Sequence record: MZ443771.1
Direction: 5' to 3' (one strand)
DNA length: 64,000 bases
Shown: positions 28-17,144 of the stretch, one piece after another
How the letters are laid out: every line of letters begins with the position of its first letter
Position numbering within the stretch: position 1 is the stretch's first letter
Translations under genes and position numbers: made by a program
Notes under the pieces: model-generated
Database searches by the model: none
What the model was told of the DNA's origin: nothing
What the model saw: the letters and a program-made list of their open reading frames with translations, nothing else

Positions 28-2559
28 ATGGCGAAAACGAACAACAAGGCCGAGAAAAAGGCAGAGAAGAAAGCTAAAGTCAAAGCCAAGAAAAGTGGCG
101 CATCGGCTGTAGCTTCTGACGATATCGGCGGCGTAGAGGTCATGGGCTTTGACCTTGCGAGTTTGATGGACGATGTGCTTGACGGCATCGAAAAGAAAAC
201 GAAAGTAAGCTCTCAGGATGCAGCACGTCACGCACCTCGTATTTCTACTGGTTGCCTTGCGCTTGACATGTACCTGTCTGGTGGTATTGTACCGGGCGGT
301 TGGTATACGTTCAGCGGCGGTGAGCAGTCGTGCAAGTCAACAATGACCATGAGTATCATGGCGAGCCTGATTCGTCTGCATTACTCTGGCATTAGTGTAG
401 TGTTCGACTACGAAGGTTCAACCGATGCAGAGTACGTTGCTGGTCAGTTGAAGACGTTCGGCGTTAAAGTTGATCCGAAGACAATCTTCGGTGTGCGTGA
501 CGACGAAGACGGTAGTTGGATCGTTAAGCCTAAGATCCGTTACTATGCACCAGACAACGGTGAGCGCTTCTTCGATTATATGTCGATGCTGCGTCGTCGT
601 CTGCCTGACAAGATCGTTGAGAAAGACGGCTCTGCGTACTACATCTTTGAGAACAACAAAGAGAACGCGAAGAAGCTGGCTGGCAAGTACGACAAGAAAT
701 GGTTCAGTCGTAACAACCAGTTCAAAGTCGCTGCGCCTGACGGTCACATGCAAGCGATGGTTATCGTTGACTCTTATCCGGCAATGCTGCCTGATCAGGT
801 CGATGATGATGACGGTTCGAAAGCAATGGCGCTGCAAGCGCGTATGTTCTCTGACGGCATCAAACGTTTCCGTGGCGGTATGCGTCGTAAGATGATGACC
901 ATCGTTGGCGTTAACCAGTTGCGTCAGAAACCTGCTGTAATGTTCGGCAGCCCTGAGTATGAGCCCGGTGGCGATGCGTTGAAGTTCTACTGCTTCGACC
1001 GTGATACTCAGATTCGTACTAATCACGGTGTGCTGACTGCACCTCAGATCAAAGAGCTGTTGGACAACGGCACTGAGGTGAGCGTTGAGTCGTTCGATGG
1101 CTACCAGAAGATCAATGGTGCGTGGAAAGTTGAAGACGCTCCGTTCCCAATCGAACTGAACGCTGGTGGACACGCATACGTTGGTAGCGCTGAACACCGC
1201 CAGTTTACTTTCATGTTCGACACAACTGCTGATGGTATGGCCGTGCTGCGTCCTGAGTGGAATACGCTCAACCAGCTTGCTCAGTACCCAGAGCAGAAAG
1301 GTCAGTATGCAGCACTGCGCGTACCGCCTGTGAAAGAACTGAAAGAGAACGTGCCTGATGCGTTTGATGAAGCAAGCCAGCTCGTTAGTAACCTGCTTGG
1401 TAATGCTGACTTCGAAAGCGTACAACTGCCTCTGGCATCTTTCGGTGATACCACGTTCGCAGCGAACGTACTGACCACCAATATGATTGGCGATCAGGAC
1501 GATGTTCACACGTTCTCTTTGTGGGCACGTCACCTGCTGTCTATCGGTATCTACGCGTATGCTGACGAAAGCGGTCTGCACATTCCGGGTCTGAACAAAC
1601 ATGAACTGGAAGCGGCTGTAGCGCAAGACGAACTCGGTGCGTTTGCTGGTATCAGCTTCGAAGCCACCAGCCGTCAACGTCAAACGCAGATGCTGTCTGT
1701 TATCGCTGACGTGTTCCCTGAACTGACTCGCTACGTTTTGGACTATCAGTTGCAGACAGGTCAGGATAAAATCTATCTGGGCCCAGAACAAGACTTCGCT
1801 CAGGCACTCGATCTGATTCTGCACAAACAGATTGAAGGTTACGATGACCTGTACGATCTGCTGATGCAGCAACTGGCCTACGTTGAAGACTGGTACAACT
1901 TCGACAACTCAATCGTTCCTGTTCCGTTCACGCTGAAAGCTATCGTGAATCCGACTGAGTTCTGGGATGTGAACGTTGCCGAAACGTCTGTGGTGATCAC
2001 TAACGGCTTCGTCAGTCACAACTCTGACGTGCGTGTGCGTCTGGCCTCTCGTGCTGTTCCTGAAGGTTGGCCGAAACTCAAAGACGCTCCAGGCATCGTT
2101 GGTGAGAAGTCTGTTACTGTCGAAGGCGGCACTGACCGCTATCGTTTCATTGCTGCTAAGACCATCAAGAACAAGATGGGTGGCATCCCTAACCAGAGCA
2201 CTTGGCTGCGCTTGTGGGAAGCTGACGGCAACGGTGAAGCGCGCGGCTTTGACCCAGTGTTTGATACGTGGCACTATCTGAAAACTCTCGGCCTGATTAA
2301 CGGTACTCGTAAGAGCTTCAAGATCAAAGCGCCTTGCCCGCTCGCATCTGATGTTAAGATGGACTGGGATGACTTCCGTACTCTCATCAACGGCAGCAAG
2401 ACTCAGGTTGTCGATGTGTGTAAGAAACTGAAAGTCAAACCTGCTGGCTTGCGTCTGTGGTGCTTCAAGTTCGTGCAGTCCACCAAGGGCAACGAGATGT
2501 TGAAGAACGCTATCAGTAAGTCGGCGAAGTCTTCTAACGACGATGACGACGACGAGTAA
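28..2559 (+). CDS. recA: RecA/UvsX-like recombinase precursor containing an intein
   Basis: Walker A-like GGEQSCKST, Walker B VIVDS, QARMFSDGI, NQLRQK..MFGSPEYEPGGDALKFY|SDVR (RecA core motifs interrupted by a 344-aa insert); Lys-rich N-tail, acidic C-tail. Confidence 0.9.
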   Translation: MAKTNNKAEKKAEKKAKVKAKKSGASAVASDDIGGVEVMGFDLASLMDDVLDGIEKKTKVSSQDAARHAPRISTGCLALDMYLSGGIVPGGWYTFSGGEQSCKSTMTMSIMASLIRLHYSGISVVFDYEGSTDAEYVAGQLKTFGVKVDPKTIFGVRDDEDGSWIVKPKIRYYAPDNGERFFDYMSMLRRRLPDKIVEKDGSAYYIFENNKENAKKLAGKYDKKWFSRNNQFKVAAPDGHMQAMVIVDSYPAMLPDQVDDDDGSKAMALQARMFSDGIKRFRGGMRRKMMTIVGVNQLRQKPAVMFGSPEYEPGGDALKFYCFDRDTQIRTNHGVLTAPQIKELLDNGTEVSVESFDGYQKINGAWKVEDAPFPIELNAGGHAYVGSAEHRQFTFMFDTTADGMAVLRPEWNTLNQLAQYPEQKGQYAALRVPPVKELKENVPDAFDEASQLVSNLLGNADFESVQLPLASFGDTTFAANVLTTNMIGDQDDVHTFSLWARHLLSIGIYAYADESGLHIPGLNKHELEAAVAQDELGAFAGISFEATSRQRQTQMLSVIADVFPELTRYVLDYQLQTGQDKIYLGPEQDFAQALDLILHKQIEGYDDLYDLLMQQLAYVEDWYNFDNSIVPVPFTLKAIVNPTEFWDVNVAETSVVITNGFVSHNSDVRVRLASRAVPEGWPKLKDAPGIVGEKSVTVEGGTDRYRFIAAKTIKNKMGGIPNQSTWLRLWEADGNGEARGFDPVFDTWHYLKTLGLINGTRKSFKIKAPCPLASDVKMDWDDFRTLINGSKTQVVDVCKKLKVKPAGLRLWCFKFVQSTKGNEMLKNAISKSAKSSNDDDDDE
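991..2022 (+). mobile_element. Intein (344 aa) in RecA-like gene
   Basis: Starts Cys (CFDRDTQIRT), block B-like SAEH, ends VITNGFVSHN followed by Ser; removal restores ALKFY-SDVRVR. Confidence 0.93.
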
Positions 2560-2609: not shown

Positions 2610-3038
2610 ATGCGCACTCAAATCTTTACCGCTGATATCCTTAATCTGGAAACAGTGACTGTCAACGAAGAAGACGGTAGTGAAGTTCGTACACCCACTA
2701 TCGTGCCTAACGTTGAAGGCGAACCTGAGTTTAACATCTACACCATTCAGTCTCTGATTCAGTCAACAACTACCGGCGAGCCTGTGTCTGACACGCGCCT
2801 GATTGTGTTGATCACACCTGACCTGCTGGCGGGCTTCTCTACTAACGGTCTGGAAAACTACTTCGACCCTATTGCTCGCGTCGAAGATATCGCTGCTGGT
2901 AACGTCGGTAGCGTCCTCGGAAAACAGGTTGTTATCAACGACAAGTCTGTTGCGCCGTGTCTTGCAGTAGCAAACGTTAGCGATGTTGAAGAGGGTGTCA
3001 CAATCCTCGCGTACAGCGCCGCGCAGGTAAAACTGTAA
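2610..3038 (+). CDS. Hypothetical protein
   Basis: SD GAGGAG before ATG 2610; biased codon use; no motif recognised. Confidence 0.8.
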   Translation: MRTQIFTADILNLETVTVNEEDGSEVRTPTIVPNVEGEPEFNIYTIQSLIQSTTTGEPVSDTRLIVLITPDLLAGFSTNGLENYFDPIARVEDIAAGNVGSVLGKQVVINDKSVAPCLAVANVSDVEEGVTILAYSAAQVKL

Positions 3039-3092
3039 ATACTGATTAACAACCGAACACAAATGCTGTGTGTAGTCTCGCCCGTCTTGGGC

Positions 3093-3123
3093 ATGGGAGA
3101 GCCGGATGGCCTCCCATTTTTTT
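3093..3123 (+). terminator. Intrinsic terminator
   Basis: ATGGGAG..GCC-GGAT-GGC..CTCCCAT then T run. Confidence 0.7.
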
Positions 3124-3139
3124 ATTCTGAGGAATTTTT

Positions 3140-4213
3140 ATGAGCCAGCATAAAACTGAATTGTGGGATGAAGCTCTAGGCGGTGCACTGTCTGCTAAAT
3201 ACAATCAAACGGCTGAGTACGTCCCCGTGATTCGTAGCGTCAATGCACGACTCGTCGAGGAGATTGCTCCATTCCGTAGACGGCTTGTTGCGGGGTTTGA
3301 AAAGTTCCTGACTGACGCTAAAGGTAAGATTGAATACTTCGGTCCTTCACTCGAACAGTTCGCGTTATGGCTACAGCCGAACGGTAACTTCCAAAAGTCT
3401 GACTATGATATTGCTGTATTGTCTCATACGCATACCCATTTCTTTTGGCAGTATACCCGAGCAGAGTTTGAGTTCGAAGAAGAAGTGATGGAGCATATCA
3501 TCGAATCAGAAACACCTACCAAGATACCAGCGTCAATCATCAAGCAACTTCCTTACTGGACTCAATGGGTACGCGCACCTATAGGCGTTGATATCACAGG
3601 GGAACCTGCTGCATCTCAAGGCGCTAACCTGCACTTCTTTGGCGCTCTTGTGAGTTATTTGCGCTACGACAATAAAACGTTTCTGAATCTAAACGCGCCT
3701 GTGTTTACTGAGCGTGGGGATTGGAAAGACCCAGCGCTTATGGCTGCTAACGTTCGCGTGTGCATTGATGATGACATTGACTTCACCGACCCGAATACAA
3801 TCATTCCTTATATGCAGGGTACGCATGAAAATTTGAGTGAGGAAATGAAACAAAAGATATTCGGTGCTGTGCGTGAATGGGCGCCGAAGATGATCAGTTG
3901 TGTGTTGTTCTTGTGCTCCCAGCAAGAAGCAGTATACAAACAGGGTGCAGTGCAGCAAGCAGTTCGCCGTAAAGGCAACAACTATAAAATGCAAGCGCTG
4001 TCCAAATCGAAACAGTTTACTGTCGGCGGCGAGTTCGTTGACCAAATACGTGAGTACGAAGCTGACGCTATGCGCTCTGCATCATGGCAGCGCCGTGCTC
4101 ATATCAGACGTGGGCACTATCACCACTTCTGGACAGGGCCAAAAACAGGTGAGCGTAAACTCATTTGCAAATGGCTTCCACCGAGCATTGTTCGCGGTAC
4201 TGCCGCAGAGTAA
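3140..4213 (+). CDS. AcrVA2/FinQ-family-like protein
   Basis: C-terminal RRAHIRRGHYHHFWTG...KWLPPSIV plus W..T...F.FEEEV...IP.SI...LP.W..WV and LFLC segments match AcrVA2 as recalled from memory. Confidence 0.7.
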   Translation: MSQHKTELWDEALGGALSAKYNQTAEYVPVIRSVNARLVEEIAPFRRRLVAGFEKFLTDAKGKIEYFGPSLEQFALWLQPNGNFQKSDYDIAVLSHTHTHFFWQYTRAEFEFEEEVMEHIIESETPTKIPASIIKQLPYWTQWVRAPIGVDITGEPAASQGANLHFFGALVSYLRYDNKTFLNLNAPVFTERGDWKDPALMAANVRVCIDDDIDFTDPNTIIPYMQGTHENLSEEMKQKIFGAVREWAPKMISCVLFLCSQQEAVYKQGAVQQAVRRKGNNYKMQALSKSKQFTVGGEFVDQIREYEADAMRSASWQRRAHIRRGHYHHFWTGPKTGERKLICKWLPPSIVRGTAAE

Positions 4214-4261
4214 TAGCTCTTTTCTAAACTCCACGTATGGGCGTTATGCCCGGAGGTTAAT

Positions 4262-5020
4262 ATGTCCCGTGTACAAACTCTATGGATTCCAGATATGGAA
4301 TCGTATGAACCTTATGTCCGTTCTCTGTGTCATATGGCGCGAGCGCTGGAAAACAATGGCCTGAACTATGGTAAGTTGAAACGCGTAGTTGTTATCGGCC
4401 TGTCGAAACGCAGTGTTGAGTCTTACGTTAAACAACTGCTTAACTCTAACACTCTGCCTAACACTCTCGTCTGTTTCGGTATCGACGAAGCGCCTGACAG
4501 CCACAAAGAATTTTCGTTCATCGGCTCGCATGTTGTGTTGATGCACGACCTGACGTATGCCGGTGACAATGCGATGCACCGTGTGTCTCAACGTGTTCTC
4601 GAAATAATCCTGAGCTTGAAGCCTAAGCCACAAGACACTGAGCTTAAAAACGGTGCGCTGTCTCTCGTATACCAGAATCCTATGCTCTGGTCATTCATAC
4701 GTGACACTGGCTCAAGTATGTACGGACACAGCCGTCACATTCAATACGCAGAAGGGATCGCATCGACTGTCGGCGTAGATCAACTAATGTCCTGCGAGAA
4801 CAACGAGGACTTCCATAAGCTCCATGCGCAGACAATCACAATCGGCCAAGAGTTCTTCTACGTTAAGACCTCAGAACTGCTGTCAAGGTTAGGCAGTCTT
4901 AGTTGGTCGCTCGGCTGCATAAACAGTGAGTTCAGAGCCGACTATAAAATCGTGCTGCATGAGGATCTGCGCATACCAATCTTCGAAGAATTTCTGTTAG
5001 GTGACTTCGGGGGCTTTTAA
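4262..5020 (+). CDS. Hypothetical protein
   Basis: 252-aa ORF, SD GGAGG upstream. Confidence 0.75.
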   Translation: MSRVQTLWIPDMESYEPYVRSLCHMARALENNGLNYGKLKRVVVIGLSKRSVESYVKQLLNSNTLPNTLVCFGIDEAPDSHKEFSFIGSHVVLMHDLTYAGDNAMHRVSQRVLEIILSLKPKPQDTELKNGALSLVYQNPMLWSFIRDTGSSMYGHSRHIQYAEGIASTVGVDQLMSCENNEDFHKLHAQTITIGQEFFYVKTSELLSRLGSLSWSLGCINSEFRADYKIVLHEDLRIPIFEEFLLGDFGGF

Positions 5021-15563: not shown

Positions 15564-16609
15564 ATACGATTTCTGGCGCAATGATTGATGAAGATGTTCT
15601 GGAGTGGCTGGACGATTTTAATGGTCACAAGATTCGTGAGATGTGCGAAGCGATCAATCAGCTTGCGTATGCGCATCGCACCGAGCTGTCTATCCCGAAC
15701 ATGGGTAGCGATGAAGATCTGGCTGCGCTGTCTCATGCTGACCTGTTTACTATTCTGTCTCTCGCTTGCCCTGATGCGAAGTATGACCTGATGTTGTCTA
15801 ACGTGCAACTGCTTGGTCTTGCGCTTGCTGCCAAAGGCGTTATCGACTATCACCTGCCTGAATTGAATAGCCCGATTCTGGCAAAGCGTGAGTTTGCAGA
15901 CAAGCACCGTAAAAACATCATCGGAGGCACAAGCACTCGTGGTCAGATCGTCGCTGCCCTTAACGAATGGATCTGCGGTATGCGTGATCTTGAGATTGTA
16001 CATGCGGGTACTGACTTACCGCCTGATATTGCAGGTATGTATCTGTGTCTCGACGAGCACGAACAAGTTCGCTACGGTCGCTTGTTCCCTAACGGCAGTC
16101 AGGGTTGGACGTTCTGTGAATCGTATGCTGACGGTGGCTCTACTGGTTGGTATAGCGGTGATACGGATCACATGAGCGATGACGATCTGCCTATGTCACT
16201 ACTGACTGGCTGGGTGCTCATCTCTGAGTGGCATAGCCCGTCGCGTGAAGTGAAAGACAACGTTGTACCCATTGGCCTGAGCGACACGCATCGCATCTTT
16301 ATGTTCCTGCGCAGTCTTAGCCCTCACGTAAAAGCAGAGCTGGTGGCACACTTCGAAGGTGTGCTTGACTATAAATCGCCGACCTCTGTTGACACTATCG
16401 GTCGTTTGACTACGCACGATTGGCGTATGGCTGCTGTTGCTGTTGCTGATGACAGTGAGATACCTGATGGTGCGACAAGCTGGACTAACGTACCTGCCTG
16501 GGCGTGTTTCGTTGCAGTCGCTAAAGCACTTGGCTTCAACTTCGAAACACGCCAGTTCGACCCTCAGTTCGACTATCAGGCTAACGACGATCATTTAGAA
16601 GGAGAGTAA
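15560..16609 (+). CDS. Hypothetical protein
   Basis: 349 aa, SD AGGAG, ATGA overlap. Confidence 0.8.
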   Translation: MNTISGAMIDEDVLEWLDDFNGHKIREMCEAINQLAYAHRTELSIPNMGSDEDLAALSHADLFTILSLACPDAKYDLMLSNVQLLGLALAAKGVIDYHLPELNSPILAKREFADKHRKNIIGGTSTRGQIVAALNEWICGMRDLEIVHAGTDLPPDIAGMYLCLDEHEQVRYGRLFPNGSQGWTFCESYADGGSTGWYSGDTDHMSDDDLPMSLLTGWVLISEWHSPSREVKDNVVPIGLSDTHRIFMFLRSLSPHVKAELVAHFEGVLDYKSPTSVDTIGRLTTHDWRMAAVAVADDSEIPDGATSWTNVPAWACFVAVAKALGFNFETRQFDPQFDYQANDDHLEGE

Positions 16610-16610
16610 C

Positions 16611-17144
16611 ATGGCAAAGTCACTGGGTGTATACATGACGTATATTCTGCGTCATAAACCTCAGGACATTGGCATCGCAATGGACACCCAAGGATGGGTG
16701 TCTGTTCTGGATTTCTTGCAGAAAGCAAAGTACAAAAAGCAAGTGACCAGAGAGATGCTGATCGAAGAAGTAGAAGCGGACGATAAAGGTCGTTTTGAGT
16801 TTAACTCGAACAAGTCCAAGATTCGCTGTGTTCAAGGGCATTCTGTTGAGCACGTCATTCTCAATCTCGAACCTTGGACTGATTGTTCGCCTCTGTATCA
16901 TGGCACCGCAGAGAAGAATGTCGCTGCTATCCAGCATGAAGGTATTCTCCGACGTAAACGCAAGCACGTCCATATCAGCAACGATATCGAAACAGCTCGA
17001 CGTGTTGGACAACGCCACGGTGTACCTGTTGTGTTTCAAATCGACACACAGGCAATGATCACTCACGGTTATAAGTTCTACCGCGCAGAGAACGGAGTCA
17101 TCCTCACCGATCACGTACCGTCGCGCTATATCAGATTGGTGTAA
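16611..17144 (+). CDS. kptA: RNA 2'-phosphotransferase (KptA/Tpt1)
   Basis: ILRH, DDKGRF, IRCVQGHS, LYHGT, RKHVHIS, NGVILTDHVP motifs. Confidence 0.93.
   Translation: MAKSLGVYMTYILRHKPQDIGIAMDTQGWVSVLDFLQKAKYKKQVTREMLIEEVEADDKGRFEFNSNKSKIRCVQGHSVEHVILNLEPWTDCSPLYHGTAEKNVAAIQHEGILRRKRKHVHISNDIETARRVGQRHGVPVVFQIDTQAMITHGYKFYRAENGVILTDHVPSRYIRLV

Follow-up and report, generated by a model that had tools for sequence, protein, structure and literature searches.

What does a relative of the anti-CRISPR protein AcrVA2 act on in a jumbo phage whose isolation host is not reported to carry Cas12a? This question is raised by gp247, a plus-strand gene at positions 3140-4213 of a 64,000-nucleotide stretch of sequence record MZ443771.1 (hereafter the window). 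As the first-pass annotation had supposed, the DNA comes from a jumbo phage: the window matches Erwinia phage pEa_SNUABM_3 (MZ443770 / NC_061445; genome 266,175 bp) at 100% identity, a lytic jumbo phage of the genus Alexandravirus with Erwinia amylovora as its host, and position 1 of the window is position 201,848 of that record. Our study strongly supports gp247 as a true homologue of AcrVA2 and of the plasmid protein FinQ. By analogy with AcrVA2, we consider it somewhat better than an even bet (a probability of about 0.55) that in this maintained family member a shared C-terminal effector would be combined with a variable reader of nascent peptides, and that its targets would differ from Cas12a and from one allele class to the next.

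AcrVA2, which is encoded on mobile elements of Moraxella bovoculi (PDB 7CI1/7CI2), binds the nascent N-terminal peptide of Cas12a (bioRxiv 10.1101/2022.11.29.518452), and through its C-terminal part it associates with ribosomes and polysomes (PMC13728456). It is a recruited cellular enzyme, and not AcrVA2 itself, that then degrades the translated mRNA (bioRxiv 10.1101/2022.11.29.518452; PMC13728456). Marino et al. reported AcrVA2 homologues on mobile elements of many kinds, plasmids and megaphages among them, and noted that Cas12a is typically missing where these homologues are found and that they may have other targets; one of these homologues is FinQ, which inhibits F-plasmid conjugation and lowers tra mRNA (bioRxiv 10.1101/2022.11.29.518452). 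According to PMC13728456, this work was published in Nature in 2026. In phages, proteins of huge genomes have been found to cluster with AcrVA2 (Al-Shayeb et al. 2020, PMC7162821), and the Shewanella phage vB_SbaS_Y11 carries a putative AcrVA2 (ORF43) in a host genus with a type I-E system (PMC10846135). In these earlier cases the phages are lytic or huge and infect hosts with CRISPR systems of other types, but a syntenic locus with exchanged alleles is not described. The supplements of the preprint, in the portion available, mention no Erwinia phage.

A jumbo-phage member of the AcrVA2/FinQ family

The gene consists of one ATG-started open reading frame (ORF) of 357 residues, intact and with zero internal stops according to the ORF listing and translation, and its product (YP_010301360.1) is annotated as a hypothetical protein. 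All the sequence stretches quoted in the first-pass annotation were located in the translation: FWQYTRAEFEFEEEVM at residues 102-117, IPASIIKQLPYWTQWV at 129-144, VLFLCS at 255-260, FTVGGEFVDQIREYE at 292-306, RRAHIRRGHYHHFWTG at 318-333 and KWLPPSIV at 344-351.

A phmmer search of gp247 against PDB sequences returned AcrVA2 (7ci1/7ci2) as the sole match (E 2.4e-8), in two collinear stretches. The signal grew with the depth of the profile, from E 9.6e-10 for a profile of eight relatives to E 5e-38 for one of 118 relatives against PDB 7CI1, where the match covers residues 8-320 of the 323-residue chain. FinQ was recovered as well: a tblastn search of plasmids with gp247 matched 563 records (E 1e-5), 545 of them conjugative, and the matches listed are 'protein FinQ' genes; a representative, WP_023063753.1, aligns with gp247 in BLASTP at 3e-14 with 26% identity, and profile-profile comparison by hhalign gives a probability of 99.9% (E 1.4e-34). 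Because both AcrVA2 and FinQ came back as named matches to gp247 itself, the homology proposed in the first-pass annotation is supported for both proteins, and the likeness to AcrVA2 is far above chance.

Family resources agree with this assignment. The protein belongs to PHROG family phrog_6160 (function not assigned; E 8.5e-52, residues 64-356), and its relatives, including a protein 95% identical to it, carry precomputed matches to the Pfam family PF26125 ('AcrVA2-like'); both are sequence families whose phage members have no assigned target. It is important to note that the apparent size of the family depends on the search: word-indexed protein searches gave 8 and then 11 relatives, and 263 with a more diverse alignment, while an exhaustive profile search gave 2,668 clusters (50% identity) at E <= 1e-3, 1,097 of them at E <= 1e-10.

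The two named relatives resemble gp247 in different ways. With AcrVA2, the likeness extends to a full-length family match, the fold, a similar size (357 residues in gp247, 322 in AcrVA2) and an origin in mobile elements, but gp247 is encoded by a lytic jumbo phage and not by a prophage acr locus, and its isolation host has no reported Cas12a. With FinQ, a protein of IncI and F-like plasmids, gp247 is homologous from about residue 116 to the C-terminus and has the C-terminal motif in common, and FinQ is likewise found in Enterobacterales, with a target there other than Cas12a. As annotated, however, FinQ has 260 residues and lacks the N-terminal ~115 residues of gp247, and with them its helical region. 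FinQ is also plasmid-encoded and defined by F fertility inhibition, with WP_023063753.1 adjoining trbA on the IncI-gamma/K1 plasmid pCMY42_035148, whereas gp247 lies in a 266-kb phage.

Predicted fold and conserved residues

An AlphaFold2 model of gp247 built from the 118-sequence alignment has a mean predicted local distance difference test score (pLDDT) of 85.2 and a predicted template modelling score of 0.83, and disorder is limited to residues 1-19 (pLDDT <50). When this model was compared with the PDB by Foldseek, only three matches were significant, and all of them are AcrVA2 (7ci2_A, 7ci1_A and 7ci1_B; E 9e-12 to 9e-11, probability 1.00); the next match has an E value of 0.13. The structural comparison thus leads to the same protein as the profile search, in line with the first-pass proposal. 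Among predicted viral structures, the model best matches homologues from other jumbo phages, namely Yoloswag, Dickeya JA13 and Erwinia RisingSun. The RisingSun homologue (BFVD A0A223LH45, from vB_EamM_RisingSun, an unrelated Erwinia jumbo phage) bears the name 'putative mycothiosynthase', and is probably a mis-annotated AcrVA2-like protein.

The predicted model and the conservation pattern divide gp247 into three regions on the plus strand. The N-terminal helical region (residues 1-135, positions 3140-3544), delimited from the model and the 7ci1 alignment, contains W103 and E113; its first 37 residues are an extension particular to the allele class of gp247, and alignments to relatives start at residues 38-53. 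The central region (residues 141-260, positions 3560-3919) comprises predicted strands between residues 141 and 226 and a predicted helix at 234-260. The C-terminal module (residues 318-357, positions 4091-4210), recognized by its conservation, carries the motif H321-x-R323-x-x-H326 and is strongly basic, with six arginines, three lysines and four histidines against two glutamates.

Published mutagenesis gives this motif its meaning. The activity of AcrVA2 is abolished by H286A, R288A and H291A and weakened by W79A and D89A (bioRxiv 10.1101/2022.11.29.518452). In the HMMER alignment, for which it should be considered that the crystallised chain is numbered as native +1, H286, R288 and H291 align with H321, R323 and H326 of gp247, so that the histidine-arginine motif singled out in the first-pass annotation coincides with residues essential in AcrVA2. 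W79 aligns with W103. These four residues of gp247 (W103, H321, R323 and H326) are among only ten invariant columns of the 118-member alignment, and H321, R323 and H326 are invariant in 14 phage alleles as well.

Allele classes and single-gene exchange

A tblastn search with gp247 found one copy each in 87 phage records, 60 of them from Erwinia phages, and nearly all the matches listed are 254-307 kb long. In Alexandravirus, Yoloswagvirus, Sasquatchvirus and Rivsvirus, the homologue lies at the same site, downstream of a UvsX-like gene. Conservation of the site is accompanied by deep divergence of the gene: pEa_SNUABM_23 and pEa_SNUABM_3 have neighbour proteins that are 99-100% identical and gp247 proteins that are 32.7% identical, and in pEa_SNUABM_33 the UvsX-like protein is 94% identical to that of pEa_SNUABM_3 and the gp247 protein 32%.

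The limits of the exchanged segment can be read from the nucleotide alignment of pEa_SNUABM_3 with pEa_SNUABM_23. The two genomes are 97-100% identical up to about position 3119, fall below 60% through most of 3120-4109 (30-nucleotide bins, with one bin at 70% and one at 73%), reach 63-77% over 4110-4229 and return to near-identity (100%) from 4230. Since near-identity on both sides frames a divergence that spans gp247, the exchanged unit is exactly one gene together with its ribosome-binding site, a cassette at 3124-4229 (given without strand) that holds the ribosome-binding site, the coding sequence and 16 nucleotides past the stop codon. Its left edge falls directly after a hairpin and T-run at 3093-3123. 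A right junction inside the conserved C-terminal motif was considered and ruled out by a finer alignment, in which the 63-77% identity there corresponds to conserved coding sequence. The GC content of the cassette (0.45-0.50, against 0.45-0.53 in the flanks) gives no hint of foreign origin. The converse case was also found: a metagenomic contig has the window allele (95% identical in amino acids, about 92% in nucleotides) between flanking genes that are only 68-84% identical.

The pairwise identity matrix separates at least three allele classes, which are no more than 34% identical to one another, within one phage genus. The first includes pEa_SNUABM_23, _30, _1 and _22, Alexandra and Dickeya AD1, with 66-95% mutual identity. 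The second is formed by pEa_SNUABM_33 and _32 (94% mutual identity), whose nearest relatives are Y3 (56%), _21 and Yoloswag. The third is the window type, also present in pEa_SNUABM_20, _40 and the metagenomic 266-kb contig (94-95%); it is 27-34% identical to the other-class Erwinia and Dickeya alleles and 23% identical to a Klebsiella jumbo-phage homologue. Within each class, gp247 is under strong purifying selection. The ratio of nonsynonymous to synonymous substitution rates (dN/dS) is 0.05-0.07, compared with 0.07-0.43 for the UvsX-like gene, gp246 and gp248 in the same phage pairs, and lies below all but two of the neighbour comparisons. These values, together with the divergence between classes, indicate old, distinct and well-conserved alleles that have been reassorted by recombination and not generated by fast drift.

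Divergence between classes is unevenly distributed along the protein. Between classes, identity is 53-78% over the last 40 residues (21-31 of 40) and 11-40% elsewhere, with about 5-27% in residues 1-60 and 141-260. Residues 141-260 are the most variable: in bins of 20 residues, a fraction of 0.07-0.27 of 13 other phage alleles match gp247.

One relative of the window type stands apart. Contig AAHPOS010000001.1 (GCA_007314735.1; 266,303 bp), labelled as Salmonella enterica serovar Infantis, is an Alexandravirus-like jumbo phage. Its window-type allele has lost the C-terminal third and the motif within it, and the gene that follows is missing its 5' part, both in a single rearrangement; no trace of the lost third was found in any frame. 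This deletion suggests that a gene of the gp247 type is dispensable.

Candidate mechanism, target and competing explanations

An AcrVA2-like mechanism for gp247 is plausible by analogy. The conserved basic C-terminal module, with its H321-x-R323-x-x-H326 motif and the WTGP...KWLPP strands, would be the common effector of a ribosome-linked step and, as in AcrVA2, would lead a host enzyme to degrade the mRNA under translation. Recognition of a particular nascent polypeptide would fall to the variable N-terminal and central domains. The modular conservation of gp247 fits the reported binding of ribosomes by the C-terminal part of AcrVA2 (PMC13728456). As to the target, the CRISPR-Cas inventory given for E. 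amylovora consists of a type I-E system flanked by CRR1 and CRR2 and a remnant array of type I-F, without mention of Cas12 (PMC9004355); Cas12a is for this reason an unlikely target. The same source names plasmid pEU30 as the origin of an unexplained anti-CRISPR activity seen in certain E. amylovora strains (PMC9004355). More likely targets of gp247 would be a different protein of host defence or one encoded by a competing mobile element; the allele classes may plausibly differ in what they target. That discrete classes occur in phages isolated on one host species speaks for a polymorphic target rather than for a conserved housekeeping one. We suggest, tentatively and with more doubt than confidence, that the classes, at least three in number, could be natural variants, differing in specificity, of a single platform for co-translational mRNA silencing, exchanged to match the defences that the phages meet.

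Several observations weigh against the AcrVA2-like reading of gp247 as a whole. Outside the C-terminus, gp247 is only about 15% identical to AcrVA2, with some 37 extra N-terminal residues, and what is known of target recognition in AcrVA2 is not transferable to it. The residue aligned with D89 is E113, a conservative change but not an aspartate. The global fit of the model to AcrVA2 is moderate (template modelling score 0.47-0.55, root mean square deviation 9-11 Å), most likely on account of a different orientation of the domains in the predicted model. Scans of gp247 with Pfam-A and NCBIfam gave no match, as did a Pfam-A scan of five of its relatives, in both cases with a Pfam-A copy that apparently does not contain the PF26125 model. 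Neither an aca-type regulator, nor acrVA1, nor a recognisable anti-defence gene lies next to gp247, and the locus is therefore without the adjoining acrVA1, other acr or aca genes by which an anti-CRISPR locus is recognised. The phages are water-borne, and the absence of Cas12a, taken from the literature alone, holds for the isolation host only. Finally, the near-universal presence of the gene at a single locus, in about 60 records of jumbo phages, could just as well point to a housekeeping or regulatory role.

That last role, in which gp247 would be a conserved phage regulator of host or phage expression with no part in defence or competition, draws further on the single copy that nearly all records of Alexandravirus, Yoloswagvirus, Sasquatchvirus and Rivsvirus have at this position, on the location of the gene among SSB, UvsX-like, sigma-factor and RNA-repair genes, and on the purifying selection described above. 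A conserved target, however, leaves unexplained why alleles no more than 34% identical occur on backbones that are 98-100% identical in phages of the same host species, and the truncated allele on AAHPOS010000001.1, in an otherwise intact 266-kb genome, suggests dispensability; we therefore regard a purely housekeeping or take-over factor as improbable. Conflict with other mobile elements accounts better for the diversity, and we rate it a little higher, though still as unlikely. By analogy with FinQ, gp247 would lower the gene expression of a competing plasmid or co-infecting phage, and not that of a host defence system, through the same translation-linked route, in agreement with the effect of its homologue on F conjugation and tra mRNA (bioRxiv 10.1101/2022.11.29.518452). 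Discrete classes among phages of one host species fit competition as well as anti-defence, and homologues also occur in unrelated Erwinia jumbo phages (RisingSun). Nevertheless, the annotated FinQ is without the N-terminal region, so that the recognition parts of the two proteins are not comparable, and gp247 adjoins no recognisable exclusion or immunity gene.

The most literal transfer from AcrVA2, a genuine anti-Cas12a anti-CRISPR, would account for the family membership and for the same essential residues, but we consider it very unlikely: the cas genes reported in E. amylovora are of type I-E, accompanied only by the I-F remnant (PMC9004355), the family occurs mostly in hosts without Cas12a (bioRxiv 10.1101/2022.11.29.518452), the regions outside the C-terminal module are about 15% identical to those of AcrVA2, and three mutually divergent classes cannot all fit one conserved Cas12a peptide. 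Hardly credible, in our judgement, is a decaying or functionless relic that merely resembles the family. The annotation as a hypothetical protein and the one relative without its C-terminal third are compatible with decay, but the intact ORF, the low within-class dN/dS, the presence of all family-invariant residues and the confident fold prediction argue against it.

Gene neighbourhood and window context

The genes around gp247 are all on the plus strand. According to the annotation, those upstream encode an RNA ligase, a sigma factor, SSB, an 843-residue UvsX-like recombinase and then the 142-residue ORFan gp246, and those downstream are ORFans of 252, 100 and 546 residues. The gene thus has a setting of DNA-metabolism genes of early type. 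No family match was obtained for gp246, gp248, gp249 or gp250 in Pfam and PHROG. The UvsX-like recombinase itself (gp245, 28-2559, plus strand) is about twice the usual size; its best Pfam RecA stretch covers only residues 244-334, and its PHROG UvsX-like match covers residues 9-834. The immediate neighbours of gp247, gp246 (2610-3038, plus strand) and gp248 (4262-5020, plus strand), are fast-evolving ORFans, with 37-83% amino-acid identity where the UvsX-like protein is 77-94% identical and with dN/dS up to 0.43; their rapid evolution makes the whole neighbourhood of gp247 a variable region. In most relatives, an extra ORFan of 233-235 residues, without a Pfam or PHROG family, lies between gp246 and the AcrVA2-like gene. 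It is not present in pEa_SNUABM_3, _23 and _30, and it does not covary with allele class.

In front of gp247, a Shine-Dalgarno-like GAGGA (3129-3133, plus strand), read from the sequence, lies 6 nucleotides before the ATG. The hairpin at the left edge of the cassette (3093-3123, plus strand) is terminator-like and marks the end of the upstream gene, with a stem at 3093-3117 that contains one bulge and a T-run at 3117-3123; the RNA fold of 3075-3140 has an energy of -25 kcal/mol (z -2.5). The terminator scan missed this hairpin because of the bulge, and folding revealed it. A promoter scan upstream of gp247 found no sigma-70-like site.

In the window as a whole (1-64000), the annotated genes are nearly all on the plus strand and hypothetical, and no tRNA gene and no Rfam family at the gathering threshold were found in its 64 kb. 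An RNA 2'-phosphotransferase is annotated as gp272 (16602-17135, plus strand), and an RNA ligase as gp241 just before the window start; judging from annotation only, both may have RNA-repair functions.

Implications for the AcrVA2 family

AcrVA2 is the first bacterial case of polypeptide-specific, translation-coupled mRNA destruction, and it belongs to a family of thousands of members whose sole established natural target is Cas12a. Against this background, gp247 leaves the picture of the family unchanged: it is an uncharacterised member in a host without reported Cas12a, as the published survey predicts. The first-pass annotation had taken it to imply a new target for this mechanism. That idea is not supported as stated by our results, nor is it new, because Marino et al. 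already propose other targets for homologues where Cas12a is absent; gp247 restates the published hypothesis for one further family member. What is modestly new, relative to the sources cited here, is that the gene keeps a fixed, syntenic place across jumbo phages of Erwinia and Dickeya, together with the depth of the allele classes, the precise replacement of a single gene between near-identical genomes and the strong purifying selection within classes.

The locus represents a natural experiment, in which almost identical backbones carry alleles that are only about 33% identical and each strongly conserved within its class, and the variation outside the C-terminal module is the pattern expected if the variable part sets target specificity. 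Such allele pairs are concrete material for target finding by expression profiling. If the classes are indeed specificity variants, each would join the same ribosome-directed module to a different nascent-peptide reader, with a different defence or competitor as its target, and the near-isogenic pair pEa_SNUABM_3 and pEa_SNUABM_23 would offer a ready comparison for the first non-Cas12a targets of the family.

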